Counted from the stretch's first letter, positions 1,294-53,659 are shown. The stretch is DNA of 56,350 nt from Selaginella moellendorffii (GCF_000143415.4 NW_003314456.1:1-56350), one strand, 5' to 3'. Numbers and translations: made by a program. Notes: generated from the sequence alone by a model not told the origin.

Positions 1294-1362
1294 GGGTGAA
1301 AGCCCAAAGCGTTCGTCTCCCAGACCCTGGGGGGTTTGGTGAGCCCCAAAAGTATAGTAGGG
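1294..1362 (+). promoter_or_regulatory. Pol I core promoter-like block in LTR A
   Basis: GGGTGAAAGCCCAAAGCG..GTCTCCCAG..CCAAAAGTATAGTAGGG matches the rDNA promoter at 20544-20612(-) with the same 69-bp span. Confidence 0.82.
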
Positions 1363-2251
1363 GGAGGACTGCAGTGGAGCCAGTTTGGCCAGGAAAGGCC
1401 AGTTTGGCCCAGGAAGGCCGGACCCAGTGTTGGGTGATGAGCTGCCCACTGGGAAGTCCAAGACTAGAGTGAACACAGACCGACAAGCGGGGTAGCTTGG
1501 TGAAGTGTTCAAGAGCCGGCTCTAGTTCCCCCGGGAGATCGACTGGCCGATGCTCCCAATCCAAGTGTGGGTGGCACTACCTACTTGGATACCTGGTGTG
1601 GCTCAATGGAACCCGCTCTAAGCCCATGGCTAGAGCACCCAAGGGCAGAAGGCGAGGAGAGTACCTAGGTGGCTCGCGTAAGGCCACGGTGTTCCGAAAT
1701 GTTGTCCCAAAGGCCCAGACTGTGGAAAGGAAGAGGAGCAGTCCTCTGGGGTAGTGACCAAGGACACAGTCGTGTGGTGAGGAAGTCCCAGAGGACCGTG
1801 GGACTTAGTGGTCGGGCCTGTGGGTCTCGGTCCAGTGGCAGTGTTGGCAAACACGGCCAGGGGCAGAAAGGGACTTAGTGGGGACTGACAGAGGGATATT
1901 GGGGAAGGCTATTCCCCTTGTCGGTGGGCATCCTAAGGATGCTAAGGAGTGGATCTGAGATGACCACTCACGGATGGTTTGCCTAGTCTTGGGGAGCCAA
2001 GACTGTGATGCAAGTGGTATTGGACTACCAGTGTGGCAAAGGTGATTGGGCATGGCCTTACCGTAATGGGCTGCTATGTCGGTGGTACCTTTGAGTGTCG
2101 GTCATGGGATCGGACACATGGAGCACTTGGACCAAGTGCAAATGTTGAGTGGCATGGATGCCATTCTCGGGGCTAGCAAGTCCCAAGTCCTGGATTGGAC
2201 TTATGGAGGTTGTGAATGAGACTCCTCCAAGTGGTCGGAGGTGTGGTTAAG

Positions 2252-3396
2252 TGTAGCGCACGTGGTTTTTACCCTTTATCCTATGGTGATTTACCATAGG
2301 ATAACACCACGAAGCGGAACCTAAACCCTCTTTGTGCCACGTGACAGTTGCCACGTGTCACATACCACGTGTCCGTGCCACGTGTCCATAGGAACCCGAG
2401 GTTCAGGGCCTTGGGCCACTGAACGAAGGAACGGTGCCAAACTCCCAAGCGTGACGCCAAGGAGTGATGGAACCGGACCACGGAGCAACTCCCGAGCATA
2501 CAGCCCAAGGAGCAAAGGGACAGGAGCCCGGAGCGACTTGGAACAGTCCTGGAGCAACCAGCATCCCAATGCCAGGACCAGCACGCAAAACGGAGCCAAA
2601 CGGAGTCTAGCGCTATTTCGGCATACCGGTGGCCTAACGCGAGGATATGGGTACTCCACCAACTAGCATGGAATGGAACTTGGGCTTAGACCCAAGCCGG
2701 ACGCAGAACAAGGACAGGCACGCAAGCGGGAGCTAGACTATGCCTCAGGTTGGTCGGCCATGCCCGACCTACCCACTATCCCTACTATACATTTGGAACC
2801 CCCCACAGCCCCCCCCCCTTGAGGAACACACGCTTTGGGCTTTCACCCCAAGCCTCCCTTAGTATCAGGAGTTAGTCTCTGGGACAAGCTTGAAACTTAC
2901 TAAATATGGAATGTCCTTAGAATGTGAATTTGGACACGGGACGAACACCATTGTGTTCAGGCCGATCTCTACATTCCGTAGATATGCCAAATGAGCAAAT
3001 CTAGACACTTTCCATAAATAGTATTTGGGACCGAAATGAGACTAACACAAAGGGCATGATAGCGAGGGTGTTTGGCAGACACGGTAAGCTATCATGTAGC
3101 GATATTGAGGGACCAATCTCAATACGCGAGGGTTCTTGTCAAGCCAGTGCAAGACAGAGCAAAAGAGAACTAAAAAGCCAGGCCGAGTATGCTCAGCTAG
3201 AAACACATAGGAGTTCCTACCTTATGTCCATCTGGCTAAGTACAGGTGCTAAGCCCAGTAAACTAACACTTGAACAAGAGGGGCTAATAAAGGGAACCAG
3301 CAATACCGACCTCCTGCCATCGTGGCAGTAAGGTAAGAGTGTCCGTAAGGACTAGCCGACAGGTAACTTTCGATACCCGAAGTCACATGCGCGACA
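2252..3396 (-). repeat. Element B 3' LTR
   Basis: Direct repeat of 8401-9545, adjacent to the PPT. Confidence 0.95.
2780..2848 (-). promoter_or_regulatory. Pol I core promoter copy in B 3' LTR
   Basis: ccctactatacatttggaaccccccacagccc..acacacgctttgggctttcaccc is nearly identical to 20544-20612. Confidence 0.88.
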
Positions 3397-3409
3397 CTCT
3401 CCCCCCCTT
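3397..3409 (-). other. Polypurine tract of element B
   Basis: Minus strand reads AAGGGGGGGAGAG immediately before the 3' LTR TG. Confidence 0.88.
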
Positions 3410-6400
3410 GGGAAGATCGACGTCCTCGTCGATGCATACTCCAGTCTAGAATACCGCCAAGGAAACAACTCCATAAAAAGTTCACGGTACTCACACTATG
3501 TGAGAAATGCACCAACTTAAATGAGTTAGGGGGAACCTCTTTGTCTAACGCGGATGCGCTACCAGCTCAGACACCTTCCGGCCGTCGCCGACAAGGAAAT
3601 GACCAACAGAATCAGCCACCCTTGCTGCTCTGGGTGTCACCCAGCTACAAAAGTGTGATATGCCCTGCCCGCAGAGACATAGAGAGAGAAGCCAGAGGCC
3701 CCAACCCTCCTGAGCAAAGAAACCAAACCCGTCGGTAAGGTTTAGATAGACTACTGTCAACAGGCAGTTTAGAGTTGTTTACACGGTCACGCCCTTTCAC
3801 GGAACAAGGAACATCGACAGAGAGGCGGGTTATGTGACCAGTCGACAGTAGCTACCCCATGACTAGAGATTTCAACATGCACATGAAGTGCCGAAGCCAG
3901 TCTGCCTATACTGGCCCAAACTCAAAGATCAATATATATGGACATATCAAAGTCATAAACAATGATATCTTAGAGATTTAATTATCAGTGAATAAAGCTT
4001 AGATTAGAACACAAAAGTATTCCAAGTAAGTTATCATCCGATAAACGAGTATTATAGTATAAGAACCACCAAGATCACTATCAGTGGAAAACATAGAATT
4101 CACCATCTAACAAAATTCAATAGCAAGTATATCATCAAGTAAACTCAATGAGAAAACTTAACTACCGAAAATGGCTGATAGCATGCCAAACAACTCACAA
4201 AACACAACTCAAAGAACACAAAGTATCGTTGACTAACAAGCACAATGCTCGCGAATGTATCACCCGAAGGAAATAACATCCTAATCTATGAGAACTAACT
4301 TCGAGCAATAATCAACAGAACAAAATGAATGTTGCAAAGCAAACAAACGCTTGTTCATATTAACCATTACACTAGCCAATCCGAATAGATCCCAGCCAAC
4401 AACACGAAGGAACTCAAGTTGCCTAAGCAAGTGTTAGCAACATCTACGGATGTCTCAAACCCAAGAGACCAATCCAGAGCAAACCACAAAGAATATGTGG
4501 TATTGTGAAAAGCCATAAGCCATCAAAAAGAACAACTAACCATCATGAAAGATCATCAATCATCCCATCAATAAAGAGATGCAAAATCATCGTCTAAGAA
4601 GGAATCCACCATCCCGAAGAATAGCGAATCAATCTAGATCAACGATAATCAAGCAAAACCTCTGACAAAGATAATCAATTATCCCAGATGATAGTCAATC
4701 ATCACCAATGATTGCTAGATGCAAATACTAACTTCAACATCGAAGCTAATGAGCCAAAAATGCCTTCCCCAACAACTTCTAACAAATGGAACAATGAGCA
4801 CAAAACTCAAGAACCAAAAGCTCGAAGAAGCCTATAACTAAGTCTTGCCTAATAATGATCACGAGTCTCATAGAAGCTAACTTCAATGCTAAAGAAGAAA
4901 TCATGGTGCAACCCACAATATCTTCCTCAACACATCCATAAGCCAAACTTCATAATGCCAAAGCTTAATGAAGAGCATTTCTGCATCAATCCAAAAGCTA
5001 AGCATAACGAAGCTATGTTTAACAAGTGATCATCAAACGATCCTCCATGAATCCATCTATAGCAAGACGTAACTCACTTCATAACAAGCTCAAAAAGAAT
5101 CATTAATGATCGCTATATTCCAACTCAAATCCAGCAAGGACTCAACATTCTAATATCGATCACTAACTCTTCTTCCTCTTGTAGAGTTAGCATAATCCAC
5201 GACTAAATCACTTTTCAAGGAAAAGCTAAAGCTCAATCCTCTACTAAATAATCTCGTCTAGAACACAACTAACTCAACTTGCCACTCAGTTCATTTGAAC
5301 GTCAATATAGTTGTTAACTAGCAAATGCATGAATGCTAACAACACAAAGCTAAAGCCAAATCATCAACACTATTATCATCAGGACTAATGAAACTCAATA
5401 TCAATCCTTGGAAGGATATCTCATTTCACTTGAATCTCAATATCAACAACATCAATGACAAGGCATCACTTTAATGCCATCAACATCAGGACAAAGCTAG
5501 AAGAAAGCTAGAGTGAATCACCACTCAAAACTTTCTAGCAACCAAGCTAACCACAGTCGAAGATACCTTAGTGTGTATCCAAGACCAATCCTTCAGCAAT
5601 ACTCAGTTTCAGATACATATCATCAAGGAGTGATTCACCACGTCCAAGACTCAATGAAATCCAACACTACGGACTAGACGTAACCAAATGATATCGACAG
5701 AGGTAGAGTCGACAAGCCAACATGAAAACTCATGTAAGTCTAACGACATGATCCTCCGCAACACCACCTGGTAAAGCAAGCCCATCACTGCTAAATCATC
5801 ATCGAGCAAAGCAAGTGTCAACAGTCCTTGATGAAGTCTAGAAGTAATCACTAGTCGCAAAGCAACTAACAATCACCCCTCAACTTGCCTTCACAAGACC
5901 CAAACACTAACTCATGTCATCGAGTTACATACTTGTCCAACATGAACATAATACCCCAGGTACGAGATAAAAGTTCATAAACAAGCACAAATCAAATGAC
6001 CACTCGAATCCAATTCAACCGCCATAAGCTCACTAATGCATTTAGTCAATAGCTCTGAGCATGCCTTGAAGAGGCTAGCTATGTGATCAACACTCAGTCG
6101 AAACTAAAGTGAAGACCATGAGATGGACTCATATCGGTACACAACCTCCTCATAGACAAAGCTATAGTACGGGTACCAACATCTCAACCTCAAACAACTA
6201 AGTTGGACATCACCATCTTCAGCCAAGGTGCAGGGCTACCAAGACTAAGTCAAGATCAGTGAGAGCTCACTACTCTCATAGAGTCTTAGCGAAATGCAAG
6301 GTGCAACCTGCCACCGAGCATAATGCTACAAAAGAAAGGCACAAGAGTCACCTTTCTTAGAAAAGCGCAACGGCCACTTTTCTACATCAACTCCAGACTC

Positions 6401-6429
6401 TATCCAACTCAATTGCTTTAGCCCCAAAA

Positions 6430-6660
6430 GTTAGCATCCCTTTCGGGTCGCATCATACAAACTACCTACTAAGATCTAAGCCAACCGAAGTCAACTCCAA
6501 CCCCTTCACTAGTTTGTACTGGCTTTCGAAAATGGAATGGTTTTCGAGCAAAGTGACCAACAGATTAGCCATTGGAAAAATCTAAGAAAATTTGTGGAAA
6601 ATTTCCCATCCTAGAGAAAGAATGACTCTCAGTCCAGGAATGCAAACTTTCAAGACTCAA
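6430..6660 (-). pseudogene. Possible degenerate RT / RT-RNaseH linker relic of gypsy pol
   Basis: Manual translation gives KVCIPGLRVILSLGWEI, MANLLVTLLENHSIFE, LDLSR*FV and YDATRKG. These resemble KCEFG..V.FLGH.I, IAAPLT.LLKK..F.W and PDFS.PF...DAS..G in the expected order, with stops and frameshifts. Confidence 0.4.
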
Positions 6661-8387
6661 CCAACTTCCTCCTACTAACAACTTCACATAGGTTCACCTC
6701 AACACAAGTTCTCATGACCAACAATATGCTTAAGCATCGAACATCTTTGCCCATTTAACCGATATCCAACACCGACATCCGCAAAGTGCAAAATGAGCAT
6801 CCAAGGCTTGATCACAAAGACCACATCATCGGATATCCACATTGCACTACCACTCTTCTTCAACCACCTTCAAGATCCAATGTGAAGCCAAAACACTAAC
6901 AAGAAAAATGACATGGAAAATCAAGCTCTAAGGAAAATTCCTCATCACTCGAATCAACAATGCCACTTCCACTAACACAAGTGCTAGCGATATCAATGCA
7001 TCAACCTCACACCTTCTCCATCCAATAATCTACTCCAAGTGCTAACGGATCAACAGATGAGCTATAGCAAATGAATGCTACAACCCATTCCCAACACCTT
7101 ATGGGCAAACCCTCAAGGAAACAAGGTACCAACATAAGCTTAGCATAATGGACCACAATTGAGAATCCAGTCAAAGCTACTACAATGCTACTTCGTGCAA
7201 GTAGACTAGCTTCTCCACCAACCACTTTGGGGTTGATCATCATTTATCCAAGCAACTTCGTAAACACATTGCTCATTATCACATGGATATGATATATAAT
7301 CACAATGACTTGATCATCAATTGAGTAACACAATGAGCAATGCCTATGTCATTACTTCAAACGTTTATGTGAGTATCAAATGCCAACTCGATTCGACAAA
7401 ATGCAACATAAATGCCACACTCCACCAATAGAGGTTTACGACACCCAACACCACTAACTTTTGTTCACAACACGGACAAGCTCATGCCACTCTCTATCCG
7501 ACCAATCTCAAAACTAATCCAACACCAAGCTACTCAAGGAGCAATAGCAAGGTTCCCCGGAAAAGAATTGAGCACTGCAACCCAAGTCTTCCAATAGCGA
7601 GCCTAGACAAAATGGTTTAGTGTTTCACCACTATCCATCCCATAACTCACCACTTGTAAGACCATCATTTCCAACATGCATCAAGGTAGGGACTCTTGAT
7701 TGCATAATGTGAACACAAGCAATGAGTTAACACCTCGTTGCAAATCATCTCTCCAAGAAGAGAAAATGATTTACGTATTTGATCCTCCGTCCCCGATGAC
7801 TCTCTTTTCGGTCTCATCTTTGACCAAACCTCAAGCTTGCTTTCGCACTGCCTTCAGTTCAATCCAAGAAAAGTTTATGAGAGAGCACGGCAATGATTAC
7901 TTGAACCAATAGACTATTCCCTACAGTCTTGATTGATCCAATCATAATCATGCCTAGGAAGGATCCACTAGTGCCATGCTAAACAGCTACGGACCAGCCT
8001 ATTTGCCACTCACAACAAACCCAGGGAGGTTTGCTTTTCACCCATGGTACAAGGAACAACTCACGGAACCACTAGAACAACTTATGGAACCAACAATAGG
8101 CTAACATTAATCCTGCCAACTCAAAGTGTAACCTCGAGTTGCTAATGTGCCTCACTCACGAGCCCAAGCTCAAACTCGTGCAAATGGAACATCTCCAAAC
8201 CATCCTATGAGCCCAAGCGCAAGCTCACATCATAAGGTACAACAAGGTAACCCAAAACCTATCCCAAGGAACGATTGCAAAGTCTTTGCACCCAAACGTG
8301 TACCCACTCGGATCATCGTTTTCATCTCTGCGTATGCAACGAGACTAGTTCCCCAATCTCATTGAATAGTACTCGCTGAGACTCATC

Positions 8388-8398
8388 CTCTGATACCA
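8388..8398 (-). other. Primer binding site (tRNA-iMet) of element B
   Basis: TGGTATCAGAG two bases inside the 5' LTR end; canonical plant iMet PBS. Confidence 0.92.
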
Positions 8399-8400
8399 AA

Positions 8401-9545
8401 TGTAGCGCACGTGGTTTTTACCCTTTATCCTATGGTGATTTACCATAGGATAACACCACGAAGCGGAACCTAAACCCTCTTTGTGCCACGTGACAGATGC
8501 CACGTGTCACATACCACGTGTCCGTGCCACGTGTCCATAGGAACCCGAGGTTCAGGGCCTTGGGCCACTGAACGAAGGAACGGTGCCAAACTCCCAAGCG
8601 TGACGCCAAGGAGTGATGGAACCGGACCACGGAGCAACTCCCGAGCATACAGCCCAAGGAGCGAAGGGACAGGAGCCCGGAGCGACTTGGAACAGTCCTG
8701 GAGCAACCAGCATCCCAATGCCAGGACCAGCACGCAAAACGGAGCCAAACGGAGTCTAGCGCTATTTCGGCATACCGGTGGCCTAACGCGAGGATATGGG
8801 TACTCCACCAACTAGCATGGAATGGAACTTGGGCTTAGACCCAAGCCGGACGCAGAACAAGGACAGGCACGCAAGCGGGAGCTAGACTATGCCTCAGGTT
8901 GGTCGGCCATGCCCGACCTACCCACTATCCCTACTATACATTTGGAACCCCCCACAGCCCCCCCCCCTTGAGGAACACACGCTTTGGGCTTTCACCCCAA
9001 GCCTCCCTTAGTATCAGGAGTTAGTCTCTGGGACAAGCTTGAAACTTACTAAATATGGAATGTCCTTAGAATGTGAATTTGGACACGGGACGAACACCAT
9101 TGTGTTCAGGCCGATCTCTACATTCCGTAGATATGCCAAATGAGCAAATCTAGACACTTTCCATAAATAGTATTTGGGACCGAAATGAGACTAACACAAA
9201 GGGCATGATAGCGAGGGTGTTTGGCAGACACGGTAAGCTATCATGTAGCAATATTGAGGGACCAATCTCAATACGCGAGGGTTCTTGTCAAGCCAGTGCA
9301 AGACAGAGCAAAAGAGAACTAAAAAGCCAGGCCGAGTATGCTCAGCTAGAAACACATAGGAGTTCCTACCTTATGTCCATCTGGCTAAGTACAGGTGCTA
9401 AGCCCAGTAAACTAACACTTGAACAAGAGGGGCTAATAAAGGGAACCAGCAATACCGACCTCCTGCCATCGTGGCAGTAAGGTAAGAGTGTCCGTAAGGA
9501 CTAGCCGACAGGTAACTTTCGATACCCGAAGTCACATGCGCGACA
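8401..9545 (-). repeat. Element B 5' LTR
   Basis: Direct repeat of 2252-3396, adjacent to the PBS. Confidence 0.95.
8929..8997 (-). promoter_or_regulatory. Pol I core promoter copy in B 5' LTR
   Basis: Same block as 2780-2848, oriented to transcribe toward the PBS and internal region. Confidence 0.88.
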
Positions 9546-9585
9546 TTAAGTGACTAAAGTAGAATGGAAAATTTAGTCGTTTACA

Positions 9586-10666
9586 AGGTGGTACCTATGG
9601 ATGCCACGTGGCAAACCCTTGGAAAGGTGGCATCTTGGAGGTTGCATGTCACGTGACAAACCCTTGGAGAGGTGGCACCTTTGAGGTTGCATGCCATGTG
9701 ACATGACATTGGAAGGTACCTCTTCTGCACTTGTATGCCATGTGGCATACCTCAGGCCCTGGATATGTCGGGCCCCGGACATGTCGGGCCCCAGATATGT
9801 CGGGCACCCGATATGTCCGGCCCCAGATATATCGGGCCCCGGACATGTCGGGCACCCAGACATATCCGGGCCCCGACATATCCGGCCCCGGACATGTTGG
9901 GCCCCGGATATGTCGGGCACCCGATATGTCGGGCCCCAGAGATGTCGGGCCCCAGATATATCGGGCCCCGGACATGTCCGGGCCCCGATATCTCCGGCCC
10001 CGAACATGTCGGGCACCCGATATGTCGGGCACCCAATACGTCGGGCCCCGGACATGTCCGGGCCCCGATATCTCCGGCCCCGAACATGTCGGGCACCCGA
10101 TATGTCCGGCCCCGGAAATGTCGGGCACCCGATATATCCGGCCCCAGACATATCGGGCCCCGGACATGTCGGGCACCCGATATGTCGGGCCCCGTACATG
10201 TCGGGCACCCGATATGCCGGGCCCCAGATGTGTCTGGCCCTGGATATATCCGAGTTTTATTTTGACACGTGGCATGGCCTTTGGTTTGATCTCATAGAGT
10301 TTTATGGTTTTCAATGTGTGCCACATTGACACATGGCATGCACTTTGGTTTGTGCTCAGAGTTTTATGGTTTTCAATGTGTGCCACATTGACACGTGGCA
10401 TGTGCTTTGGTGAGTTTTATGGTTTTCAATGTGTGTCACATTGACACGTGGCATGCCCTTTGGCTTGTTCTCATAGTTAGAGTTTAGCATCCTTGTATGC
10501 CATGTGAAATACATATGTTTGGACTTGCTTGCCATGCCACGTGGTGACAGTCACAACACATTCTTTGTGACTTATATCCTAGTTAATAACTAACTAATGA
10601 CACAATTTGGCAAACACACCTTACATTGACAATTGTAAGTAGTATTTAAGGACCATACACTTATAT
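9586..10666 (-). repeat. rDNA IGS continuation: 84-bp subrepeat, GATATGTCGGGCCCC-type minisatellite (9760-10250), ~60-bp subrepeats (10260-10480)
   Basis: The left part matches the IGS at ~21560-21995. Repeats read directly. Ends at the N gap 10667-11086. Confidence 0.85.
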
Positions 10667-11086
10667 NNNNNNNNNNNNNNNNNNNNNNNNNNNNNNNNNN
10701 NNNNNNNNNNNNNNNNNNNNNNNNNNNNNNNNNNNNNNNNNNNNNNNNNNNNNNNNNNNNNNNNNNNNNNNNNNNNNNNNNNNNNNNNNNNNNNNNNNNN
10801 NNNNNNNNNNNNNNNNNNNNNNNNNNNNNNNNNNNNNNNNNNNNNNNNNNNNNNNNNNNNNNNNNNNNNNNNNNNNNNNNNNNNNNNNNNNNNNNNNNNN
10901 NNNNNNNNNNNNNNNNNNNNNNNNNNNNNNNNNNNNNNNNNNNNNNNNNNNNNNNNNNNNNNNNNNNNNNNNNNNNNNNNNNNNNNNNNNNNNNNNNNNN
11001 NNNNNNNNNNNNNNNNNNNNNNNNNNNNNNNNNNNNNNNNNNNNNNNNNNNNNNNNNNNNNNNNNNNNNNNNNNNNNNNNNNNNNN

Positions 11087-26124: not shown

Positions 26125-26244
26125 GCACCGGCGTGGGGAGTCACGCCAGGCATCTTGTGTGATGCCGTCCGTAGATGCATATACGGAGGTTGGGTTCGAG
26201 TCCCGACCCTCTAGTGCTTGGGTTCGAGTCCCAAATCACTAGGG
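26125..26244 (+). ncRNA. tRNA-like multi-hairpin element with two GGTTCGAGTCC (B-box/T-loop) motifs
   Basis: Hairpins GGCGTG/CACGCC, GGCATC/GATGCC, TCCGTA/TACGGA, GGTTGGG-TTCGAGT-CCCGACC and CTAGTG..TTGGG-TTCGAGT-CCCAA..CACTAG. Conserved in all four A internal copies. Confidence 0.6.
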
Positions 26245-32444: not shown

Positions 32445-32564
32445 GCACCGGCGTGGGGAGTCACGCCAGGCATCTAGTGTGATGCCGTCCGTAGATGTAT
32501 ATACGGAGGTTGGGTTCGAGTCCCGACCCTCTAGTGCTTGGGTTCGAGTCCCAAATCACTAGGG
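32445..32564 (+). ncRNA. tRNA-like multi-hairpin element (copy 2)
   Basis: Copy of 26125-26244; the differences fall in loops. Confidence 0.6.
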
Positions 32565-35792: not shown

Positions 35793-37692
35793 ATTTGGTA
35801 TCGGAGCTGTTCCTTAGTCCGACTTTTATTGGTGCTCAAGTATATCACCACTAGTGTTGGCATCGGAAGGTCCGAGGAGTGGGCCTATCCTTGAGGAGTA
35901 GCAAGTCGGGAAGACATGGCTCTCCATTACAGTTCATGTGTGAACTTGTAGATGAGGTGGTGGATAGAAAAGGGCCAATAATGGAACGACTTTGGGATCT
36001 TGGGAACAGTGCAAGGTTTTCCTCATTGAGTTGAGGATGTGATCCGGATGAGCATTTGTCTCAGCAAATTGGCTTAGGTTGTTGTGGTAAACAACTAAAG
36101 TTGGGATCACGGGAAAGATAGAGACTCCAAAACAATAAAGGAGTCACAAGATTATCCTCATATAGTTGAGGTTGGTGCTCATGAATGTGAGACCAAAGGT
36201 AATGACCGTGGAAGGTCAAATACGGAAGAGGACTCAAGTCCTTGAAATGGTAGCCGGGGCTACCTCTAATAAATGCTGGAACAACCCAAGGAGTTGGGGG
36301 TGTATTAAGTGGATGAGTTGGTATTCTCATCACATGGACAAGTAGTCCTAAGGGGCAAAGGTTGCCCCCAGAGAACAAAATCAAGTGTCGGAGTAACACT
36401 TGTGAAAATAGTCCTTTTGAGTAGGACCGGAATGCAAGATGTGTATTCCAGTGAGCTAGTGCCTCACAAGTAGGACCTTACGGGTCGGTGGATTAACCAA
36501 GTCCAAAACTGCTAGACGACTCAAGTAGAGTCAAGGGATGGTCCTAAAAAGGACTGAATGAAGCATTTGGACTGAGGTGCGTTGTACCCCACAAAGGATG
36601 GGGGGGGATCATAGGATCCAAGGATGAGAACAGAGAGTATCTCATCGATGGCAAAATGTGCCATGCTAAAGTTATAGGAAAGGTGTTCCTAGAAGAAAAC
36701 AACTTTGACATAAAGTTGTGTGTGACCTCTATGGGGTAGTGCTAACAGATGGTTGGCATGAGAAAGATGTAAGCGACTAATTTTTCCATTCTACTTTAGT
36801 CACTTAACCACACCTTCGACCACTTCGAGGAGTCTCACTCACAACCTCCTTAAGTCCAATTCAGGACTTGGGACTTGCTAGCCCCAAGAATGGCATCCAT
36901 GCCACTCAACACTTGCACCTGGTCCAAGTGCTCCACGTGTCCGGTCCCAAGACCGACACCCAAAGGTACCACTGACATCTCGGCCCGTTACGCTAAGGCC
37001 ATGCCCATTCACCTTTGCTGCACTAGTGGTCCAATACCACTTGCATCACCATCCCGTCTCTCCAAGACTGGGCTATCGGTCCACGAGTGGTCATCCTAGA
37101 TCCACTCCTTAGCATCCTTAGGATGCCCACAGACTTGGGGAATCGCCTTCCCCAAAGTCCCTTTGTCAGTTCCTACCAAGTCCCTTTTTGCCCCTGGCCG
37201 TGTTTGCCAACACTGCCACTGGATCGAGGCCCACAGGCCCGACCACTAAGTCCCATGGTCCTCTGGGACTTCCTCACCACACGACTGTGTCCTTGGTCAC
37301 TACCCCAGAGGACTGCTCCTCTTCCTTTCCACAGTCTAGGCCTTTGGGACAACATTTCGGAACACCGTGGCCTTACGCGAGCCACCTGGGTACTCTCCCC
37401 GCCTTTCGCCTTTAGGTGCTCTAGCCATGGGCTTAGAGCGAGGTTCCATTGAGCCATGCCTGGTATCCAAGTAGGTAGTGCCACCCACACTTGGACTGGG
37501 AGCATCGGCCAGTCGATCTCCCGGGGGAACTAGAGCCGGCTCTTGAACACTTCACCAAGCTACCCCGCTTGTCTGTCCGTGTTCACTCTAGTCTTGGACT
37601 TCCCAGTGGGCATCTCATCACCCAACACTGGGTCCGGCCTTCCTGGGCCAAACTGGCCTTTCCTGGCCAAACTGGCTCCACTGCAGTCCTCC

Positions 37693-37761
37693 CCCTACTA
37701 TACTTTTGGAGCTCACCAAACCCCCCAGGGTCTGGGAGACGAACGCTTTGGGCTTTCACCC
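37693..37761 (-). promoter_or_regulatory. Pol I promoter-like block in inverted LTR A
   Basis: Reverse complement of the 69-bp block. Confidence 0.82.
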
Positions 37762-39956
37762 TCTCAGGCTCCGGACTCGGACTCGGACTCGGACTCGGAC
37801 TCGGACTCGAACTCGGATTCGGACTCGGACTCGGGCTCGGGCTCGGTCTCGGCCTCGGCCTCGGTCTCGGTCTTGGCCTCGGCCTCGGTCTCGGTCTCGG
37901 TCCCGATCTCGGTCTCGGTCTAGGTCTCGGTCCCGGTCTCAGTCTCGACTTCGGACTCCATCTCGGACTCCATCTCGGACTCCATCTCGGACTCCATCTC
38001 GGATCCATCTCGGGTCCATCTCGGACTCCATCTCGGACTCCATCTCGGGTCCATCTTGGACTCCATCTCGGACTCCATTTCGGGTCCATCTCGGGTCCAC
38101 CTCGGACTCCATCTCGGACTCCATCTCGGACTCCACTTCGGACTCCAGCTCGGGTCCATCTCAGGTCCACCTCGGACTCCATCTAGGACTCCACTTCGGA
38201 CTCCAACTCGGGTCCATCTCGGGTCCACCTCGGACTCCACTTCGGACTCCATCTCGGACACTCCCACGTGTCATGTGTTGGTCCTTTTGGGTCCCTTTTT
38301 GGAGCCTCGCCTTTTGCTTGCTTCGTGCTCGTTCCTCGGGCACTTTGTTGGGAGTTCCACTCCCGCTCTTGACTTTTCAAGTCGGAGCTTTTGGTCCAAA
38401 CGTGTTACGCTCGTTTCGCTGTCGCTTCGGCCACTACCATGTGGCGCCCTTCTGGCTCCACTTTGGGGCCTAGGGATTTTGTATCTCACAACTCCACCAC
38501 CCATAGACGAAGTTCGATGTCCTCATTGAACGGTAAACCCTTTCATAAAGTAACACCCACACGTGTTACCATTTCCATCCTTGGCACCTAGCCAATCTTT
38601 GTCTATGGTTTGACATCAAAGGCTCACCATGCCTTGTCCATCCTTTAAGGAGCGTAGTCTCTCTAACTTAGAGACTGATTGGACCACATGTAATGGTTCT
38701 CCCCTTTTATTGGTTTAGTTCTCGCTAAACCTCTTAGAGACCCTTCTCTAAATCAATCCCACTACTCCTTCTCGAGTAGTCTCAATTTCCATCTATTGAA
38801 TGTTTGCACCTTGGAACTTTTATTCTTTTGACTTTTTGGAAGTCAATTTTCTAGGTGTCTCCAACACCTTGCATTGCACAGATTGTGCAACTCCACTTCC
38901 CTATCCTAGAAAGTTCATTACTTGAGGGCACCATCATCCTCTCTTCTATTTCGTGCCACCTTGGGCACTAAGTTCCATTTATCATACTTTGTGCTAAGGC
39001 TGTCCATGGCCCTATCATTTGGCTACCTTACCGCTCCCTCACTTGGAGCCTTTACTTCGCCAAATTGGAGCACTTAGGAATCCGTCCTTGAAAGTCCGCT
39101 TCCTTTCCCACAAGCTGTTAGTATTGAACACATTAGTGTTCCTTGGCTAACTTTGCCATTTGGATCCCTTCCATTAAATTCCATGGCCCAAACTTTGGCC
39201 ACTAGTCCTTTGCTCCTATCCTTGATTGTTGCACCCAGCAACATCGGATCGCTACCTCCATTTTTGAGGTATCCTTTCGGTTCCATAGCAAAGACTCTTT
39301 TTTGCCAAGTTTGGAGGATGTTCACCCCTAGTATGTTTCTTTAGCATATTCTGCTATGGGTTCTATCCATGGCCCAACTTCGTGACCCTCCCATGGGTTT
39401 TTTATAGAGACTACTTTCCTCGGACTCACTATGCCATCGGACGGACATAGTTTATTTCCCTTAGGTGCTCTTCCCACTTGGTCATCACGACCAAGCCACA
39501 CCATCTTAAACAGTTCAATTTCAACATTTTGAACCAGGAACTTCATTCCTTAGCCAACCAAGGACCTTGTCCTTATCTGGCCATAAGATCACCTAGTGAT
39601 CTCACCTTGGCACCTTAATAGAGTTGCCAAGAGGTACTTGGTCTTCTAGACCTCCAAGTTGTTGACTATAACCCCGGGGGCATCCCCCACACTCAGCGGT
39701 GCACCCAAGCTAGCCCTTACGGCCAAGGGTTCATAGCAACTGAGATTAGGTGTCCCCATCTCACTCACCACGACCTTGGTGCCACTTGCACCAAAGCGTT
39801 CAAGTTAGATATGCCGAGCTTTCACACTAAGCAATCTAACCGTGCATCACGACTCCGAGGCATCCCTCGCTTGGCGGTGTGCCCAAACCAGTCTCCCCAC
39901 TGAGAGTCCATGACCACCGAAATATGAGTGTCCTCATATTCCAAACCATCACCACG

Positions 39957-40077
39957 CCCTAGTGATTTGGGACTCGAACCCAAGCACTAGAGGGTCGGGA
40001 CTCGAACCCAACCTCCGTATATGCATCTACGGACGGCATCACACTAGATGCCTGGCGTGACTCCCCATGCCGGTGCA
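39957..40077 (-). ncRNA. tRNA-like multi-hairpin element (copy 3, inverted)
   Basis: Reverse complement of 26125-26244; one C>T change turns a G:C stem pair into G:U or A:C. Confidence 0.55.
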
Positions 40078-43000
40078 CCAACCTATTTTTAAAGCGCGCT
40101 ACAGATCACAGCTTAGGAACCTAGTTCCTCCACACTGCTAAGTCCTCTCACTTGACATGTCTATGATCATGCATGGACTCCTCCATGTTCGGCCCCCTGG
40201 CCCACCCTTTTTGAAGATATCACCTTCAACTAGGGTCTTTGTTCCCCCGACGTGCCAATCTCACTTGGCAAGTCCTCCGACCATTGTAACATGGTTCCTG
40301 CATAAGCGTGAAAGTCCTTGACCATCGACTTTCGTTCAAAGCCCTCTCTTTGAACACTCGGGAACTACTTCCCTAACCTTGATAACCTTGCCTCATGGCA
40401 AGCTTCAAGACCACGCTTCTGCTACGCCACTCTGATTTCGCGCGTTCCATGAACCATTTACACTTGGCTTTTTTAGGTACTACGCTACCTAGAATCGTCT
40501 TTGGGAACTTTGAAGGAACTCTGTCCCTCAGCTTGCTAAGGCCTCCCCTTTCGCAAGCTTTATAGTTGCCATATAGTCTAACATGGACAATTCCATATTT
40601 TAGACTCTCCATGGCATCACGGTTGCTAGCAACAACATCCTCGAGCACCCTCTTGATTCTCCACTCCCAACTTTCATAACCACTATTGGATATGCCCTTT
40701 GATTTCTATGGTTCAGTTCCATCCCAACACTACTTGCCTTTGGCTTCACACCTTTCCTTCGGTCATTCTCCTCCAGACCAAGAGGATAGCTTTGCACTTT
40801 CTATCATGCCTTAGCAAGTATTCTTAGGGATGAACCTACCCAATAGCCCAGGGAGTGGTTCCTCAATCCGGGTATGCTCAACTTATAATCCCACACACTG
40901 GGGTTACATTGTTGCTTATGGGCCTTTACATGCTCATCACTAGCCTTGCCAAAATTCCATTTTTGGCTTTGTCCAACTTGGGTAGACAGTCCTCTCCTAT
41001 CTCCGCAACCTTGGACATTTGGATAGCACCTTCTATCCATCATTCGCTAGGGACTTAGTCCCTTGGGCTTTATCCATTGCCCTCGCGACATCAAACACCA
41101 CCTTCTAGTGTTCTAGAGTGTTCGGGTGTCCCAATGATGGCTTTCTTGACGATGAGTATTTCCTTTTATGACATTAACTTACTATATCGCAACATAAGCA
41201 ACTTATCCCCCGTAAGGGTATATCCGACTTCCCTATACTAGAAGTCTTGGGTAGCTACCTTCTACCCGTTTAACCAGTTATTTTGCACCTCTTGCTTAGT
41301 TGCCTCATAGTTGTCAAGTCCTACAACTCATTGCTTGGTGCTTTCACACCTCCATCACTATCTGGGTCACCACACTCCAACTGCATGCTCTACAGCTTAG
41401 GCTATGCCATTCCCATTTCCATTGGGATTCCTTTGGCAAGGGGTTCTCATGAACCCACCAACATAGCCTCAAGGTATCACACCTTGGCACATTTGGTGTC
41501 TCCACACCATCGGCTCCACGAGCCTACCTCTATGACATTTCCCTTCGTGTCTAAGTCTTTGCCAAGACCAACACCGCTCTTTCTCCTGCCAACCATCTGT
41601 TAGCACTGCCCCATAGAGGTCACACACAACTTTATGTCAAAGTTGTTTTCTTCTGGGAACACCTTTCCTATAACTTTAGCATGGCACATTTTGCCATCGA
41701 TGAGATACTCTCTGTTTTCATCCTTGGATCCTATGATCCCCCCCCATCCTTTGTGGGGTACAACGCACCTCAGTCCAAATGCTTCATTCAGTCCTTTTTA
41801 GGACCATCCCTTGACTCTACTTGAGTCGTCTAGCAGTTTTGGACTTGGTTAATCCACCGACCCGTAAGGTCCTACTTGTGAGGCACTAGCTCACTGGAAT
41901 ACACATCTTGCATTCCGGTCCTACTCAAAAGGACTATTTTCACAAGTGTTACTCCGACACTTGATTTTGTTCTCTGGGGGCAACCTTTGCCCCTTAGGAC
42001 TACTTGTCCATGTGATGAGAATACCAACTCATCCACTTAATACACCCCCAACTCCTTGGGTTGTTCCAGCATTTATTAGAGGTAGCCCCGGCTACCATTT
42101 CAAGGACTTGAGTCCTCTTCCGTGCCATGCTAAAGTTATAGGAAAGGTGTTCCTAGAAGAAAACAACTTTGACATAAAGTTGTGTGTGACCTCTATGGGG
42201 TAGTGCTAACAGATGGTTGGCATGAGAAAGATGTAAGCGACTAATTTTTCCATTCTACTTTAGTCACTTAACCACACCTTCGACCACTTCGAGGAGTCTC
42301 ACTCACAACCTCCTTAAGTCCAATTCAGGACTTGGGACTTGCTAGCCCCAAGAATGGCATCCATGCCACTCAACACTTGCACCTGGTCCAAGTGCTCCAC
42401 GTGTCCGGTCCCAAGACCGACACCCAAAGGTACCACTGACATCTCGGCCCGTTACGCTAAGGCCATGCCCATTCACCTTTGCTGCACTAGTGGTCCAATA
42501 CCACTTGCATCACCATCCCGTCTCTCCAAGACTGGGCTATCGGTCCACGAGTGGTCATCCTAGATCCACTCCTTAGCATCCTTAGGATGCCCACAGACTT
42601 GGGGAATCGCCTTCCCCAAAGTCCCTTTGTCAATTCCTACCAAGTCCCTTTTTGCCCCTGGCCGTGTTTGCCAACACTGCCACTGGATCGAGGCCCACAG
42701 GCCCGACCACTAAGTCCCATGGTCCTCTGGGACTTCCTCACCACACGACTGTGTCCTTGGTCACTACCCCAGAGGACTGCTCCTCTTCCTTTCCACAGTC
42801 TAGGCCTTTGGGACAACATTTCGGAACACCGTGGCCTTACGCGAGCCACCTGGGTACTCTCCCCGCCTTTCGCCTTTAGGTGCTCTAGCCATGGGCTTAG
42901 AGCGAGGTTCCGTTGAGCCACACCTGGTATCCAAGTAGGTAGTGCCACCCACACTTGGACTGGGAGCATCGGCCAGTCGATCTCCCGGGGGAACTAGAGC

Positions 43001-43156
43001 CGGCTCTTGAACACTTCACCAAGCTACCCCGCTTGTCTGTCCGTGTTCACTCTAGTCTTGGACTTCCCAGTGGGCATCTCATCACCCAACACTGGGTCCG
43101 GCCTTCCTGGGCCAAACTGGCCTTTCCTGGCCAAACTGGCTCCACTGCAGTCCTCC

Positions 43157-43225
43157 CCCTACTATACTTTTGGAGCTCACCAAACCCCCCAGGGTCTGGG
43201 AGACGAACGCTTTGGGCTTTCACCC
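43157..43225 (-). promoter_or_regulatory. Pol I promoter-like block in inverted LTR A
   Basis: Reverse complement of the 69-bp block. Confidence 0.82.
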
Positions 43226-45447
43226 TCTCAGGCTCCGGACTCGGACTCGGACTCGGACTCGGACTCGGACTCGAACTCGGATTCGGACTCGGACTCGGGC
43301 TCGGGCTCGGTCTCGGCCTCGGCCTCGGTCTCGGTCTTGGCCTCGGCCTCGGTCTCGGTCTCGGTCCCGATCTCGGTCTCGGTCTCGGTCTCGGTCCCGG
43401 TCTCAGTCTCGACTTCGGACTCCATCTCGGACTCCATCTCGGACTCCATCTCGGATCCATCTCGGGTCCATCTCGGACTCCATCTCGGACTCCATCTCGG
43501 GTCCATCTTGGACTCCATCTCGGACTCCATTTCGGGTCCATCTCGGGTCCACCTCGGACTCCATCTCGGACTCCATCTCGGACTCCACTTCGGACTCCAG
43601 CTCGGGTCCATCTCAGGTCCACCTCGGACTCCATCTAGGACTCCACTTCGGACTCCAACTCGGGTCCATCTCGGGTCCACCTCGGACTCCACTTCGGACT
43701 CCATCTCGGACACTCCCACGTGTCATGTGTTGGTCCTTTTGGGTCCCTTTTTGGAGCCTCGCCTTTTGCTTGCTTCGTGCTCGTTCCTCGGGCACTTTGT
43801 TGGGAGTTCCACTCCCGCTCTTGACTTTTCAAGTCGGAGCTTTTGGTCCAAACGTGTTACGCTCGTTTGGCTGTCGCTTCGGCCACTACCATGTGGCGCC
43901 CTTCTGGCTCCACTTTGGGGCCTAGGGATTTTGTATCTCACAAAAGAGCGGTGTTGGTCTTGGCAAAGACTTAGACACGAAGGGAAATGTCATAGAGGTA
44001 GGCTCGTGGAGCCGATGGTGTGGAGACACCAAATGTGCCAAGGTGTGATACCTTGAGGCTATGTTGGTGGGTTCATGAGAACCCCTTGCCAAAGGAATCC
44101 CAATGGAAATGGGAATGGCATAGCCTAAGCTGCAGAGCATGCAGTTGGAGTGTGGTGACCCAGATAGTGATGGAGGTGTGAAAGCACCAAGCAATGATTT
44201 GTAGGACTTGACAACTATGAGGCAACTAAGCAAGAGGTGCAAAATAACTGGTTAAACGGGTAGAAGGTAGCTACCCAAGACTTCTAGTATAGGGAAGTCG
44301 GATATACCCTTATGGGGGATAAGTTGCTTATGTTGCGATATAGTAAGTCAATGTCATAAAAGGAAATACTCATTGTCAAGAAAGCCATCATTGGGACACC
44401 CGAACACTCTAGAACACCAGAAGGTGGTGTTTGATGTCGCGAGGGCAATGGATAAAGCCCAAGGGACTAAGTCCCTAGCGAATGATGGATAGAAGGTGCT
44501 ATCCAAATGTCCAAGGTTGCGGAGATAGGAGAGGACTGTCTACCCAAGTTGGACAAAGCCAAAAATGGAATTTTGGCAAGGCTAGTGATGGGCATGTAAA
44601 GGCCCATAAGCAACAATGTAACCCTAGTGTGTGGGATTATAAGCTGAGCATACCCGGATTGAGGAACCACTCCCTGGGCTATTGGGTAGGTTCATCCCTA
44701 AGAATACTTGCTAAGGCATGATAGAAAGTGCAAAGCTATCCTCCTGGTCTGGAGGAGAATGACCGAAGGAAAGGTGTGAAGCCAAAGGCAAGTAATGTTG
44801 GGATGGAACCGAACCATAGAAATCAAAGGGCATATCCAACAGTGGTTATGAAAGTTGGGAGTGGAGAATCAAGAGGGTGCTCGAGGATGTTGTTGCTAGC
44901 AACCGTGATGCCATAGAGAGTCTAAAATATGGAATTGTCCATGTTAGACTATATGGCAACTATAAAGCTTGCGAAAGGGGAGGCCTTAGCAAGCTGAGGG
45001 ACAGAGTTCCTTCAAGGTTCCCAAAGACGATTTTAGGTAGCGTAGTACCTAAAAAGGCCAAGTGTAAATGGTTCATGGAACGCGCGAAATCAGAGTGGCG
45101 CAGCAGGAGCGTGGTCTTGAAGCTTGCCATGAGGCAAGGTTATCAAGGTGAGGGAAGTAGTTCCCGAGTGTTCAAAGAGAGGGCTTTGAACGAAAGTCGA
45201 TGGTCAAGGACTTTCACGCTTATGCAGGAACCATGTTACAAAGGTCGGAGGACTTGCCAAGTGAGATTGGCACGTCAGGGGAACAAAGACCCTAGTTGAA
45301 GGTTATATCTTCAAAAAGGGTGGGCCAGGGGGCCGAGCATGGAGGAGTCCATGCATGATCACAGACATGTCAAGTGAGAGGACTTGGCAGTGTGGAGGAA
45401 CTAGGTTCCTAAGCTGTGATCTGTAGCGCGCTTTAAAAATAGGTTGG

Positions 45448-45568
45448 TGCACCGGCGTGGGGAGTCACGCCAGGCATCTTGTGTGATGCCGTCCGTAGAT
45501 GCATATACGGAGGTTGGGTTCGAGTCCCGACCCTCTAGTGCTTGGGTTCGAGTCCCAAATCACTAGGG
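45448..45568 (+). ncRNA. tRNA-like multi-hairpin element (copy 4)
   Basis: Copy of 26125-26244. Confidence 0.6.
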
Positions 45569-47032
45569 CGTGGTGATGGTTTGGAATATGAGGACACTCA
45601 TATTTCGGTGGTCATGGACTCTCAGTGGGGAGACTGGTTTGGGCACACCGCCAAGCGAGGGATGCCTCGGAGTCGTGATGCACGGTTAGATTGCTTAGTG
45701 TGAAAGCTCAGCATATCTAACTTGAACACTTTGGTGCAAGTGGCACCAAGGTCGTGGTGAGTGAGATGGGGACACCTAATCTCAGTTGCTATGAACCCTT
45801 GGCCGTAAGGGCTAGCTTGGGTGCACCGCCAAGTGTGGGGGATGCCCCCGGGGTTATAGTCAACAACTTGGAGGTCTAGAAAACCAAGTACCTCTTGGCA
45901 ACTCTGTTAAGGTGCCAAGGTGAGATCACTAGGTGATCTTATGGCCAGAAAGGGACAAGGTCCTTGGTTGGCTAAGGAATGAAGTTCCTGGTTCAAAATG
46001 TTGAAATTGAACTGTTTAAGGTGGTGTGGCTTGGTCGTGATAACCAAGTGGGAAGAGCACCTAAGGGAAATAAACTATGTCCGTGCGATGGCATAGTGAG
46101 TCCGAGGAAAGTAATCTTTATAAAAGACCCATGGGAGGGTCACGAAGTTGGGCCGTGGATAGAGCCCATAGCAGAAGATGCTAAAGAGACGTACTAGGGG
46201 TGAACATCCTCCGGACTTGGTAAAGAAGAGTCTTTGCTATGGAACCGAAACAATACCTCAAGGAGGGAGGTAGAGATTTGATGTTGCTTGGTGCAACAAT
46301 CAACGGATAGGAGCAAAAGATGAGTGGCCAAGATAGGGCCGTGGAATCCCTTGGAAGGAATCCAAGTGACAAAGTTAGGCGAGGAACACTAATGTGTTGG
46401 ACGCTAACAAGTTGCGGGAAAGGAAGTGTGTTTCCAAGGAGGGATTCCGAATTGCTCCGATTTGGCGAAAGTGGAAGCTCCAAGGGAGGGAGCGGTAAGG
46501 TAGCCAAATGATAGGGCGATGGACAACCCTAGCACAAAGTGTGATAAATGGAACTTAGTGCCCAAGGTGGCACGAAATAGAAGAGAGGATGATGGTGCCC
46601 TCAAGTAATGAACTTCCTAGGATAGGGAAGTGGAGTCGCACAAACTGTGCAATGCAAGGTGTTGGAGACACCTAGGAAATTGACTCCAAGAAGTCAAAAT
46701 TCAAAGTTCCAAAGTGCAAAGGTTATATCGATGGAAATTGAGACTACTCGAGAAGGAGTAGTGGGATTGACTTAGAGAAGGGTCTCTAAGAGGTTTAGCG
46801 AAAACTAAACCAATAAAAGGAGAGAACCATTACATGTGGTCCAATCAGTCTCTAAGTTGGAGAGACTACGCTCCTTAAAGGATGGACAAGGCATGGTGAG
46901 CCTTTGATGTCAAACCATAGATAAAGATTGGCTAGGTGCCAAGGATGGAAATGGTAACACGTGTGGGTGTTACTTTATGAAAGGGTTTACCGTTCGATGA
47001 GGACATCGAACTTCGTCTATGGGTGGTGGAGT

Positions 47033-48646
47033 TGTGAGACACAAAATCCCTAGGCCCCAAAGTGGAGCCGGAAGGGCGCCACATGGTAGTGGCCGAAGCG
47101 AGAGCCAAACGAGCGTAACACGTTTGGACCAAAAGCTCCGACTTGAAAAGTCAAGAGCGGGAGTGGAACTCCCAACGAAGTGCTCGAGGAACGAGCACGA
47201 AGCGAGCAAAAGGTGAGGCTCCAAAAAGGGACCCAAAAGGACCAACACATGACACGTGGGAGTGTCCAAGATGGACTCTAGTTGGAGTCCGAAATGGAGT
47301 CCGAGATGGAGTCCGAGATGGACCCGAGATGGAGTCCGAGTTGGATCCGAAATGGAGTCCGAGATGGAGTCCGAGATGGACCCGAGATGGACCCGAGATG
47401 GAGTCCGAGATGGAGTCCGAGATGGACCCGAGATAGACCCGAAATGGAGTCCGAGATGGAGTCCGAGATGGACCCGAAATGGAGTCCGAGATGGACCCGA
47501 GATGGAGTCCGAGATGGAGTCCGAGATGGACCCGAGATGGACCCGAGATGGAGTCCGAGATGGAGTCCGAGATGGAGTCCGAGATGGAGTCCAAAGTCGA
47601 GACCGAGACCGGGACCGAGACCGAGACCGAGACCGAGACCAAGATCGGGACCGAGACTGAGACCGAGGCCGAGGCTGAGACCGAGCCCGAGCCCGAGTCC
47701 GAGTCCGAATCCGAATCCGAGTCCGAGTCCGAGTCCGAGTCCGAGTCCGGAGCCTGAGAGGGTGAAAGCCCAAAGCGTTCGTCTCCCAGACCCTGGGGGG
47801 TTTGGTGAGCTCCAAAAGTATAGTAGGGGGAGGACTGCAGTGGAGCCAGTTTGGCCAGGAAAGGCCAGTTTGGCCCAGGAAGGCCGGACCCAGTGTTGGG
47901 TGATGAGCTGCCCACTGGGAAGTCCAAGACTAGAGTGAACACGGACCGACAAGCGGGGTAGCTTGGTGAAGTGTTCAAGAGCCGGCTCTAGTTCCCCCGG
48001 GAGATCGACTGGCCGATGCTCCCAGTCCAAGTGTGGGTGGCACTACCTACTTGGATACCAGGCGTGGCTCAACGGAACCTCGCTCTAAGCCCATGGCTAG
48101 AGCACCTAAAGGCGATAGGTGGGGAGAGTACCCAGGTGGCTCGCGTAAGGCCACGGTGTTCCGAAATGTTGTCCCAAAGGCCCAGACTGTGGAAAGGAAG
48201 AGGAGCAGTCCTCTGGGGTAGTGACCAAGGACACAGTCATGTGGTGAGGAAGTCCCAGAGGACCGTGGGACTTAGTGGTCGGGCCTGTGGGCCTCGATCC
48301 AGTGGCAGTGTTGGCAAACACGGCCAGGGGCAGAAAGGGACTTGGTAGGAACTGACAAAGGGACTTTGGGGAAGGCGATTCCCCAGGTCTGTGGGCATCC
48401 TAAGGATGCTAAGGAGTGGATCTAGGATGACCACTCGAACACATGGCCCAGTCTTGGAGAGACGAGGTGGTGATGCAAGTGGTGTTGGACCACTAGTGCA
48501 GCATAGGTGAATGGGCCTGGCCTTAGCGTAACGGGCCGAGATGTCAGTGGTACCTTTGAGTGTCGGTCTTGGGACCGGACACGTGGAGCACTTGGACCAG
48601 GTGCAAGTGTTGAGTGGCAGGGATGCCATTCTTGGGGCTAGCAAGT
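47033..48646 (+). repeat. A LTR (3' end lost in gap)
   Basis: TGTGAGACAC after the PPT; runs into the N gap at 48647. Confidence 0.9.
47760..47828 (+). promoter_or_regulatory. Pol I promoter-like block in LTR A
   Basis: Same 69-bp block. Confidence 0.82.
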
Positions 48647-53633: not shown

Positions 53634-53659
53634 CTAAACCCTAAACCCTAAACCCTAAA
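53634..53659 (+). repeat. Short interstitial telomeric repeat (CCCTAAA)n
   Basis: CTAAACCCTAAACCCTAAACCCTAAAC. Confidence 0.85.

Follow-up and report, generated by a model that had tools for sequence, protein, structure and literature searches.

Retrotransposons with long terminal repeats (LTRs) are, to our knowledge, transcribed by RNA polymerase II (Pol II), and the only exceptions we know of, Cassandra and Ajax, carry a captured Pol III promoter. Both use a promoter taken from 5S (PMC10853983, PMC10946416), and Cassandra copies track the mutations of the host promoter (PMC10853983; PMC10946416). Here we analyse a 56,350-nucleotide stretch of the Selaginella moellendorffii genome (GCF_000143415.4, NW_003314456.1:1-56350), referred to below as the window, which contains one ribosomal DNA (rDNA) unit on the minus strand, invaded by transposable elements (TEs). 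Two unrelated families of non-coding LTR retroelements in the window, A and B, share a 69-bp block with the predicted RNA polymerase I (Pol I) promoter of that unit. In our reading, to which we give a probability of about 0.55, both families captured the -65 to +4 core promoter independently, fixed it in sense orientation in the middle of their LTRs, and would now use it as a Pol I LTR promoter.

Large retrotransposon derivatives (LARDs), such as the Sukkula-type elements of Triticeae, have long LTRs, a multi-kb interior without open reading frames (ORFs), a primer binding site (PBS), a polypurine tract (PPT) and target site duplications (TSDs); their mobilisation is presumed to occur in trans. 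Their transcription is ascribed to Pol II, and we know of no report of an rDNA promoter in their LTRs. The rDNA itself is home to the non-LTR elements R1 and R2 and to Pokey; R2 is co-transcribed with pre-rRNA by Pol I, and Pokey carries sequence derived from the intergenic spacer (IGS) (PMC10946416, PMC8789037, PMC3849761). In a 2024 review of rDNA and TEs, the rDNA-derived TE sequences collected in Table 2 are the 5S-promoter TEs, SINE28 and the Pokey IGS segment only (PMC10946416). A literature search, with most subscription journals outside its reach, turned up no LTR described as carrying a 35S/Pol I promoter, and text searches with diagnostic oligomers of the window yielded no paper. Non-autonomous LTR elements that capture promoters are known; judged from the sequence, the polymerase class, Pol I, would be new.

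Results

Ten copies of a 69-bp block

The block extends from the 18-mer GGGTGAAAGCCCAAAGCG to the motif TATAGTAGGG and occurs ten times in the window: once in the rDNA spacer (the native copy), in seven family A LTRs and in two family B LTRs (Table 1). Exact matches to TATAGTAGGG start at 1353, 22399, 28719, 34858 and 47819 on the plus strand and at 2780, 8929, 20544, 37693 and 43157 on the minus strand. When up to one mismatch is allowed there are 12 matches against 2.0 expected, a number reached in 0 of 100 shuffles; GGGTGAAAGCCCAAAGCG has 10 exact matches, with 0.06 expected by chance. The distance between the two motifs is constant in all pairs, which makes every block exactly 69 bp long, and none of the ten copies contains an indel despite the central G-run. 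A sequence-only reading of the window had proposed ten copies of constant length, with those in the LTRs placed mid-LTR and directed toward the PBS. Exact motif matches recovered every copy where it had been placed, the spacing proved invariant, and the block, in sense and pointing to the PBS in both families, occupies positions 799-867 of 1793 in the A LTR and 549-617 of 1145 in the B LTR.

A variant one mismatch from the transcription initiation site (TIS) motif, TATAGTACGG, is present at 6163-6172 and 12269-12278, in B interior sequence and antisense to the element. These sites have no upstream element and fit chance, with two such matches expected.

When the copies are aligned with 200-bp flanks, the likeness among the native, A and B contexts ends at the block edges. 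By blastn, the native copy matches B over 82 bp at 93.9% identity (20538-20618, equivalent to -71 to +10) and A over 69 bp at 81% (-65 to +4). The bases flanking the TIS are specific to each context: GGGGGAGGAC in A, GGGATAGTGGGTAGG in B and GGGATAGTGTGGG in the native copy. Conservation among plant Pol I promoters is highest from -55 to +1, and in Arabidopsis the interval from -55/-33 to +6 is enough for initiation (PMC7928365). The span shared with the rDNA covers this minimal interval in both families, except for +5/+6 in A. On this comparison the shared segment is essentially the minimal Pol I core promoter and little else, and may be sufficient for initiation.

The native copy and the direction of capture

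The native block lies downstream of typical IGS subrepeats and an AT-rich stretch. Its initiator motif (20544-20553) is the sole match to TATAGTAGGG with at most one mismatch between the IGS repeats and 18S, and places the predicted +1 at the A before GGG (20547), so that the block spans approximately -65 to +4. TATAGTAGGG is identical to the TIS used for Avena rDNA (PMC5407837), and the native motif fits the plant-wide Pol I initiator consensus TATATA(A/G)GGG (PMC7928365). Of the Avena primers in PMC5407837, those for the ETS have no match here and the universal 18S primer does, so that the sequence is not from Avena; its TIS by itself would suggest a grass or another monocot. A second IGS copy, at 1-489, begins around 380 bp upstream of the expected promoter position, leaving a single native promoter in the window.

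Comparison of the native, A and B sequences over the 69 positions gave 51 invariant sites, 13 at which native and B agree against A, five at which native and A agree against B, and none at which A and B agree against the native copy. Every variable site is therefore private to A (13) or B (5), and the native copy has 0 of 18 private changes, which has a probability of (2/3)^18, or ~7e-4, under equal branches. The lack of sites shared by A and B alone makes the rDNA copy the hub and indicates that the block did not pass from one family to the other. Two independent captures of the core promoter from rDNA are thus well supported by the substitution pattern.

The changes are unevenly placed. All 13 A-private changes fall within the central 33 positions (P = 1.5e-5) and spare both ends; four of the B changes are central and one is at about -12. 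All ten copies retain, without a single change, a 19-nt upstream element located 45-65 nt from the TATA, and likewise the initiator motif. Intact ends at a fixed spacing are what would be expected of a bipartite promoter that depends on spacing.

Could the transfer have run the other way, with the promoter of this unit, or of the rDNA of the whole lineage, derived from an LTR, or with 20544-20612 as what is left of an LTR in a degenerate rDNA copy? Pol I promoters change quickly in evolution, the rDNA unit is TE-invaded with a 25S gene that ends at a gap, and the three-taxon comparison is unrooted. Against this, the absence of private changes in the native copy fits poorly, blastn found no LTR homology in the flanks of the native block, and the distance across the external transcribed spacer (ETS) to an intact 18S is normal. 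The Avena-identical initiator also argues against such an origin, as do two unrelated LTRs that share this segment with the native copy and nothing with each other. We regard the reversed direction as very unlikely. That 20544-20612 is the native promoter rather than an LTR remnant had been assumed in the sequence-only reading; the substitutions, flanks, 18S distance and initiator bear this out, with the reservation that the window offers one native promoter only. We infer that this segment is the canonical rDNA promoter, and consider an LTR remnant unlikely.

Two unrelated families of non-coding LTR retroelements

Both families have the features by which LTR retrotransposons are recognised: direct TG...CA LTRs, TSDs of 4-6 bp, a PBS and a PPT. 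Three independent 5-bp TSDs (AGGTG, TTAAG and AAAGA) were found, each present singly in the uninterrupted paralogue (TTAAG, for example, once in uninterrupted A LTRs), and these imply at least three separate integrations. The PBS consensus of A and B, TGGTATC(A/G)GAG(G/C), lies 2-3 nt past the LTR, and that of each family agrees at 11 of 12 positions with what we take to be the PBS for initiator methionine tRNA (tRNA-iMet).

Family A LTRs are ~1.8 kb long, start with TGTGAGAC (TGTGAG) and end with TTACA; the whole element is ~7.8 kb, with a ~4.2-kb interior. The PBS TGGTATCGGAGC starts at 23648, 29968 and 35796, and a PPT-like GGGTGGTGGAG immediately precedes the LTR. The A1 TSD, AGGTG, lies at 485-489 and 9586-9590, and the insertion site is inside an 84-bp IGS subrepeat. 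In A2 a partial LTR duplicate is followed by the PBS at 23648-23659. The B LTRs have TGT...ACA termini and differ at 3 of 1145 positions, which indicates recent movement only; current mobility is presumed. The B PBS, TGGTATCAGAGG, is at 8387-8398, two bases past the 5′ LTR, a PPT (3397-3409) precedes the 3′ LTR, and the interior is ~5 kb.

The interiors of both families contain no ORF of at least 100 aa, their longest stop-free segments being at most 134 aa. A comparison of 20 such interior segments with Pfam gave nothing near threshold, with two chance-level matches (E 0.08 and 0.14); the interiors may retain short degenerate coding remnants. A and B thus combine a multi-kb interior with a lack of gag or pol capacity, as LARD-type elements do. 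Over LTR and interior, A and B resemble each other in the block and nowhere else. The earlier proposals that the families are unrelated outside the block and that both are non-coding therefore stand, as does, between A and B, the proposal that similarity is restricted to the block.

We ruled out the possibility that the LTRs are host IGS duplications or spacer promoters on the basis of their TSDs, PBS, TG..CA ends and orientations. All nine non-native copies lie within LTRs with TE termini, and those in A1-A4 and A7 run opposite to the rRNA gene. A relaxed Rfam scan (5S to E <= 0.1) returned only rRNAs and mir-3116 artefacts, with no 5S anywhere in the window and no 5S, tRNA or snoRNA within the LTRs.

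All seven A LTRs carry the block, as the sequence-only reading had it, but they stand for fewer than seven independent events. A5 and A6, with 99.6% identity, belong to a 1.8-kb segmental duplication, and A2, A3 and A4 are the successive, shared LTRs of one LTR-interior-LTR-interior-LTR array.

Putative promoter signals in the LTRs

The block holds the sole TATA of either LTR sense strand. Its most likely role, on sequence grounds, is that of the element promoter, setting the U3/R boundary at the A of TATAGTA/GGG; this boundary is predicted at ~864 in the A LTR and ~614 in the B LTR.

A TATA-like initiator could also serve Pol II as a TATA box, with capped RNAs starting ~25-30 nt downstream and the rDNA origin incidental. 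Pol II can use plant rRNA promoters, which have a TATA-like element, according to the summary of Doelling and Pikaard 1996 in PMC7928365, and no other TATA is available in either LTR. In the same summary this use is inefficient and the start altered, and its weakness speaks against this reading. Nor would a TATA-box role need the conservation of the 19-nt upstream element, which is perfect in ten copies. We therefore hold use of the block by Pol II to be rather improbable.

Spacer-like modules in the LTRs

The LTRs contain further sequence reminiscent of the spacer. In A, a ~570-bp array made up of units of 12 and 6 bp (GTCCGAGATGGA, GAGTCC, GAGACC) lies ahead of the block, in A3 at ~28093-28659. 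The 10-mer GGAGTCCGAG is confined to these arrays and to the native 5′ETS at about +37 to +80, with the same orientation to the promoter in both; as it is of low complexity, a shared module is suggested only. In this respect the claim that similarity is restricted to the block needs qualification, since the likeness of A to rDNA is not quite confined to the 69 bp. The 9-mer CACGTGGCA, with 46 occurrences in the window where 0.32 are expected, is confined to the IGS subrepeats and the B LTRs. An 84-bp subrepeat can be aligned with positions 1000-1066 of the B LTR at a score of 33 (shuffle maximum, 29). The pattern suggests that both LTRs are mosaics that include IGS parts. Such mosaics would fit adaptation to a Pol I environment and, equally, frequent recombination with the spacer.

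Several observations weigh against a captured, functional Pol I promoter. All copies seen are in or beside rDNA, and spacer recombination or gene conversion could maintain the block without function. The sole native promoter copy in the window belongs to a TE-invaded rDNA unit truncated at a gap. Neither LTR sense strand has a canonical TATA box or an AATAAA signal; this is in keeping with the block as the promoter, but in such GC-rich LTRs it is only weakly informative. The elements contain no recognisable Pol I terminator, so that R is not delimited. Pol I transcripts are normally nucleolar and unstable, and those of the elements would have to reach virus-like particles. Scans of metagenome, viral and prokaryote genome collections with the full block found no related locus. 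Finally, among A copies the bin holding the block has a diversity (pi) of 0.009 against an LTR mean of 0.060, no 69-bp bin being more conserved, and the block is within the lowest 10% of sliding windows across the A LTR, but the next ~280 bp are almost equally low, so this conservation is not block-specific. With a neighbour so similar, the low diversity of the block is only weakly informative, and we do not take it as evidence of selection.

A looser metagenome scan with a 17-mer returned 20 loci, none similar to the window, and these were set aside as chance matches.

These points bear on another explanation, in which the block is a neutral passenger: elements resident in rDNA acquired pieces of the spacer through template switching, read-through or gene conversion, and are transcribed by Pol II from another site in the LTR or by read-through. 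LTR capture of host fragments is well known. The location of every copy in or next to rDNA, the other spacer-like modules of both LTRs, which imply that spacer sequence enters readily, and the low diversity that extends beyond the block would all follow. Harder to reconcile with neutral uptake is that two unrelated families kept one functional unit, with near-identical boundaries, orientation and mid-LTR position. The block also has no indel in any copy, the substitutions avoid both promoter ends, and the LTRs have no alternative TATA box. We consider a neutral passenger unlikely, and continue to favour capture of a promoter by both families.

Organisation of the locus

The features of the window are collected in Table 1. 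Its rDNA and its retroelements are of plant type, which sets aside a human origin of the contig. The 25S match breaks off at Rfam model position 1888, the 3′ half of the gene being missing from the assembly. Within the 5′ETS, a direct repeat of ~215 bp with 87% identity (19177-19392 and 19517-19730) resembles the ETS subrepeats of grasses. The IGS has 84-bp subrepeats with the CACGTGGCA core at 21145-21654 and a 16-bp array at 21729-21998. This 16-bp unit, the near-palindromic GGCCCCGGACATGTCG, is arrayed in both spacer copies, at 9755-10247 (~31 units) and 21729-21998 (~16 units). The sub-threshold Rfam mir-3116 matches fall on these arrays and were rejected as artefacts of palindromic hairpin repeats. 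The first spacer copy also has a CACGTGGCA-based array of 62-bp repeats (3.6 copies, 10262-10478), which is absent from the other copy, where the A cluster starts instead.

Table 1 Features of the window. Coordinates count from the first nucleotide of the stretch.
Feature	Coordinates	Strand	Details
Family A blocks (starts)	1294, 22340, 28660, 34799, 47760	+	
Family A blocks (starts)	37693, 43157	-	
Family B blocks (starts)	2780, 8929	-	
Predicted native rDNA core-promoter block	20544-20612	-	Same strand as 18S, 2,050 nt upstream of intact 18S
rRNA genes overall	14175-18497	-	
18S	16688-18497	-	Rfam match, 1779.7 bits
5.8S	16214-16367	-	Rfam match, 152.7 bits
25S, 5′ half	14175-16018	-	Rfam match, 1725.5 bits; ends at assembly gap
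5′ETS	18498-20547	-	Includes (GAGTCC)n tract 20464-20508 and internal repeat
IGS upstream of promoter	20613-21988	-	84-bp subrepeats and 16-bp array
Second IGS copy	1-489, resumes 9586-10666	-	99.6% identical to 20991-21480; interrupted by A1
A1 solo LTR	490-2251 + 9551-9585	+	Split by B insertion; block 1294-1362
A2 LTR	21989-23333	+	5′-truncated, abuts IGS 16-bp array; block 22340-22408
A3 LTR	27862-29653	+	1792 bp, TGTGAG...TTACA; block 28660-28728; PBS 29968-29979
A4 LTR	34030-35792	+	Block 34799-34867; PBS TGGTATCGGAGC 35796-35807
Reversed A insertion	36768-43942	-	TSD AAAGA 36763-36767 / 43943-43947; interior rearranged, no PBS
A5 LTR	36768-38490	-	Block 37693-37761
A6 LTR	42232-43942	-	Block 43157-43225
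A7 LTR	47033-48646	+	Cut by gap at 48647; block 47760-47828
A interior	23660-27861	+	Paralogues 29980-34029, 43943-47032
Complete family B element	2252-9545	-	7.3 kb; TSD TTAAG 2247-2251 / 9546-9550
B 3′ LTR	2252-3396	-	1145 bp; block 2780-2848
B 5′ LTR	8401-9545	-	1145 bp; block 8929-8997, pointing to PBS
CACGTGGCA triple cluster in B LTRs	8484-8533, also 2335-2384	-	Core motif of IGS subrepeats
Partial second B interior	11087-13887	-	Isolated contig between two gaps; 99.4% identical to 4980-7782

Two of the A copies have a tandem duplicate of the LTR 3′ end, ~311 bp long and ~90% identical, between LTR and PBS (23028-23650 and 29348-29970). A4 runs directly into its PBS without this duplicate, so that two structural variants of A coexist. 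Around the reversed insertion, 36658-38491 is repeated directly at 42122-43943 (99%) and 36222-36767 is repeated in inverted orientation at 41578-42123 (99.3%); either rearrangement or mis-assembly could account for these duplications.

The window has six N gaps (10667-11086, 13972-14126, 27561-27660, 48647-48985, 51043-51277 and 55232-55409), none of which is spanned by a block, an LTR boundary or a TSD. The gap at 27561-27660, within an A interior, is spurious: the 20 nt before it, AGAGGATAGGCAAGGCATGG, recur directly behind it and the paralogues have no break at this point, which shows that the sequence runs on without interruption. The gaps 10667-11086 and 13972-14126 enclose an isolated 2.9-kb contig (11087-13971) that resembles B interior and diverges at 13888; with gaps on both sides, continuity of the first spacer copy into 25S, or interruption of 25S by B, is not established. 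The last 7 kb (48986-56350) have no similarity to the rest of the window and no block, and six long GC-rich ORFs in this 3′ tail had no match in Pfam.

Six gaps and the odd inverted and direct duplication around 36222-43943 could point to an artefact, with repeats of the rDNA/TE region collapsed or chimerically joined in assembly. The blocks, in contrast, lie inside long gap-free LTRs whose flanks are consistent and family-specific, including a 7.3-kb B element with matching TSDs, and the A copies are 92-97% identical to one another, that is, not identical. An assembly artefact is hardly credible as the source of the block copies.

Discussion

If the block is the LTR promoter, Pol I with its species-specific initiation factors would start at the copy in the 5′ LTR. 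Transcription would read through the PBS, the non-coding interior and the PPT and into the 3′ LTR past the second block, giving an uncapped genomic RNA with a terminal repeat. The Gag, reverse transcriptase and integrase of an autonomous element would then copy and insert this RNA in trans, primed by tRNA-iMet. In this scheme the activity of the promoter, the polymerase involved, the point where R ends and the partner that mobilises the RNA in trans are all inferred. The block makes it reasonable to suppose that Pol I transcribes the elements, and rRNA promoters at ectopic sites do recruit Pol I transcription (PMC7928365). Such transcription may also, as the sequence-only reading supposed, account for the loss of coding capacity in both families and go with a nucleolar way of life. 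That a Pol I promoter explains why the elements reside in the IGS is a weak argument: it draws on a single rDNA-containing window and so carries a problem of ascertainment.

Should the reading hold, retroelements would have hijacked all three nuclear polymerases, and the two families would provide a natural system in which to study the packaging and reverse transcription of uncapped nucleolar RNA. Species-specific Pol I promoters would tie the elements to host factors, which predicts promoter co-evolution and host restriction. The elements would also offer a route by which functional Pol I promoters spread genome-wide, potentially bringing nucleolar activity to ectopic sites or setting promoters in competition. 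The copies are a natural mutagenesis series even without activity, and mark the constrained positions and spacing of the promoter. We see an even chance that A and B are the first LTR retrotransposons to possess a Pol I promoter, that the two families were converted independently by capture of the species-specific core promoter along with further spacer modules that imitate the layout of the IGS, and that LTR and host rDNA promoters evolve together, as those of Cassandra and 5S do.

Duplicates of the gene promoter in the spacer are familiar from the IGS spacer promoters of Xenopus, Arabidopsis and others. Those are host duplications that face the gene, whereas the A and B copies sit in TSD-flanked LTRs, several of which face away. 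R1, R2 and Pokey have no Pol I promoter of their own, insert in 28S and ride the host transcript; the promoter of A and B, in contrast, would travel with the element. By their described features, A and B fit the operational definition of LARDs.

The closest parallels are Cassandra in plants and Ajax in ribbon worms, which are likewise non-coding LTR elements with a tRNA-iMet PBS and 5-bp TSDs, and whose LTR promoter, copied from an rRNA gene, is thought to free the element from Pol II (PMC10853983, PMC10946416). A and B differ from Cassandra in having no 5S-like sequence, by Rfam, in the window. They also exceed the size of Cassandra and other terminal-repeat retrotransposons in miniature (TRIMs), with LTRs of 1145 and ~1790 bp in elements of 7.3 and ~7.8 kb. 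In place of the internal Pol III control region of Cassandra and Ajax they carry what appears to be an external, upstream 35S Pol I promoter, and they do so in two unrelated families within one genome.

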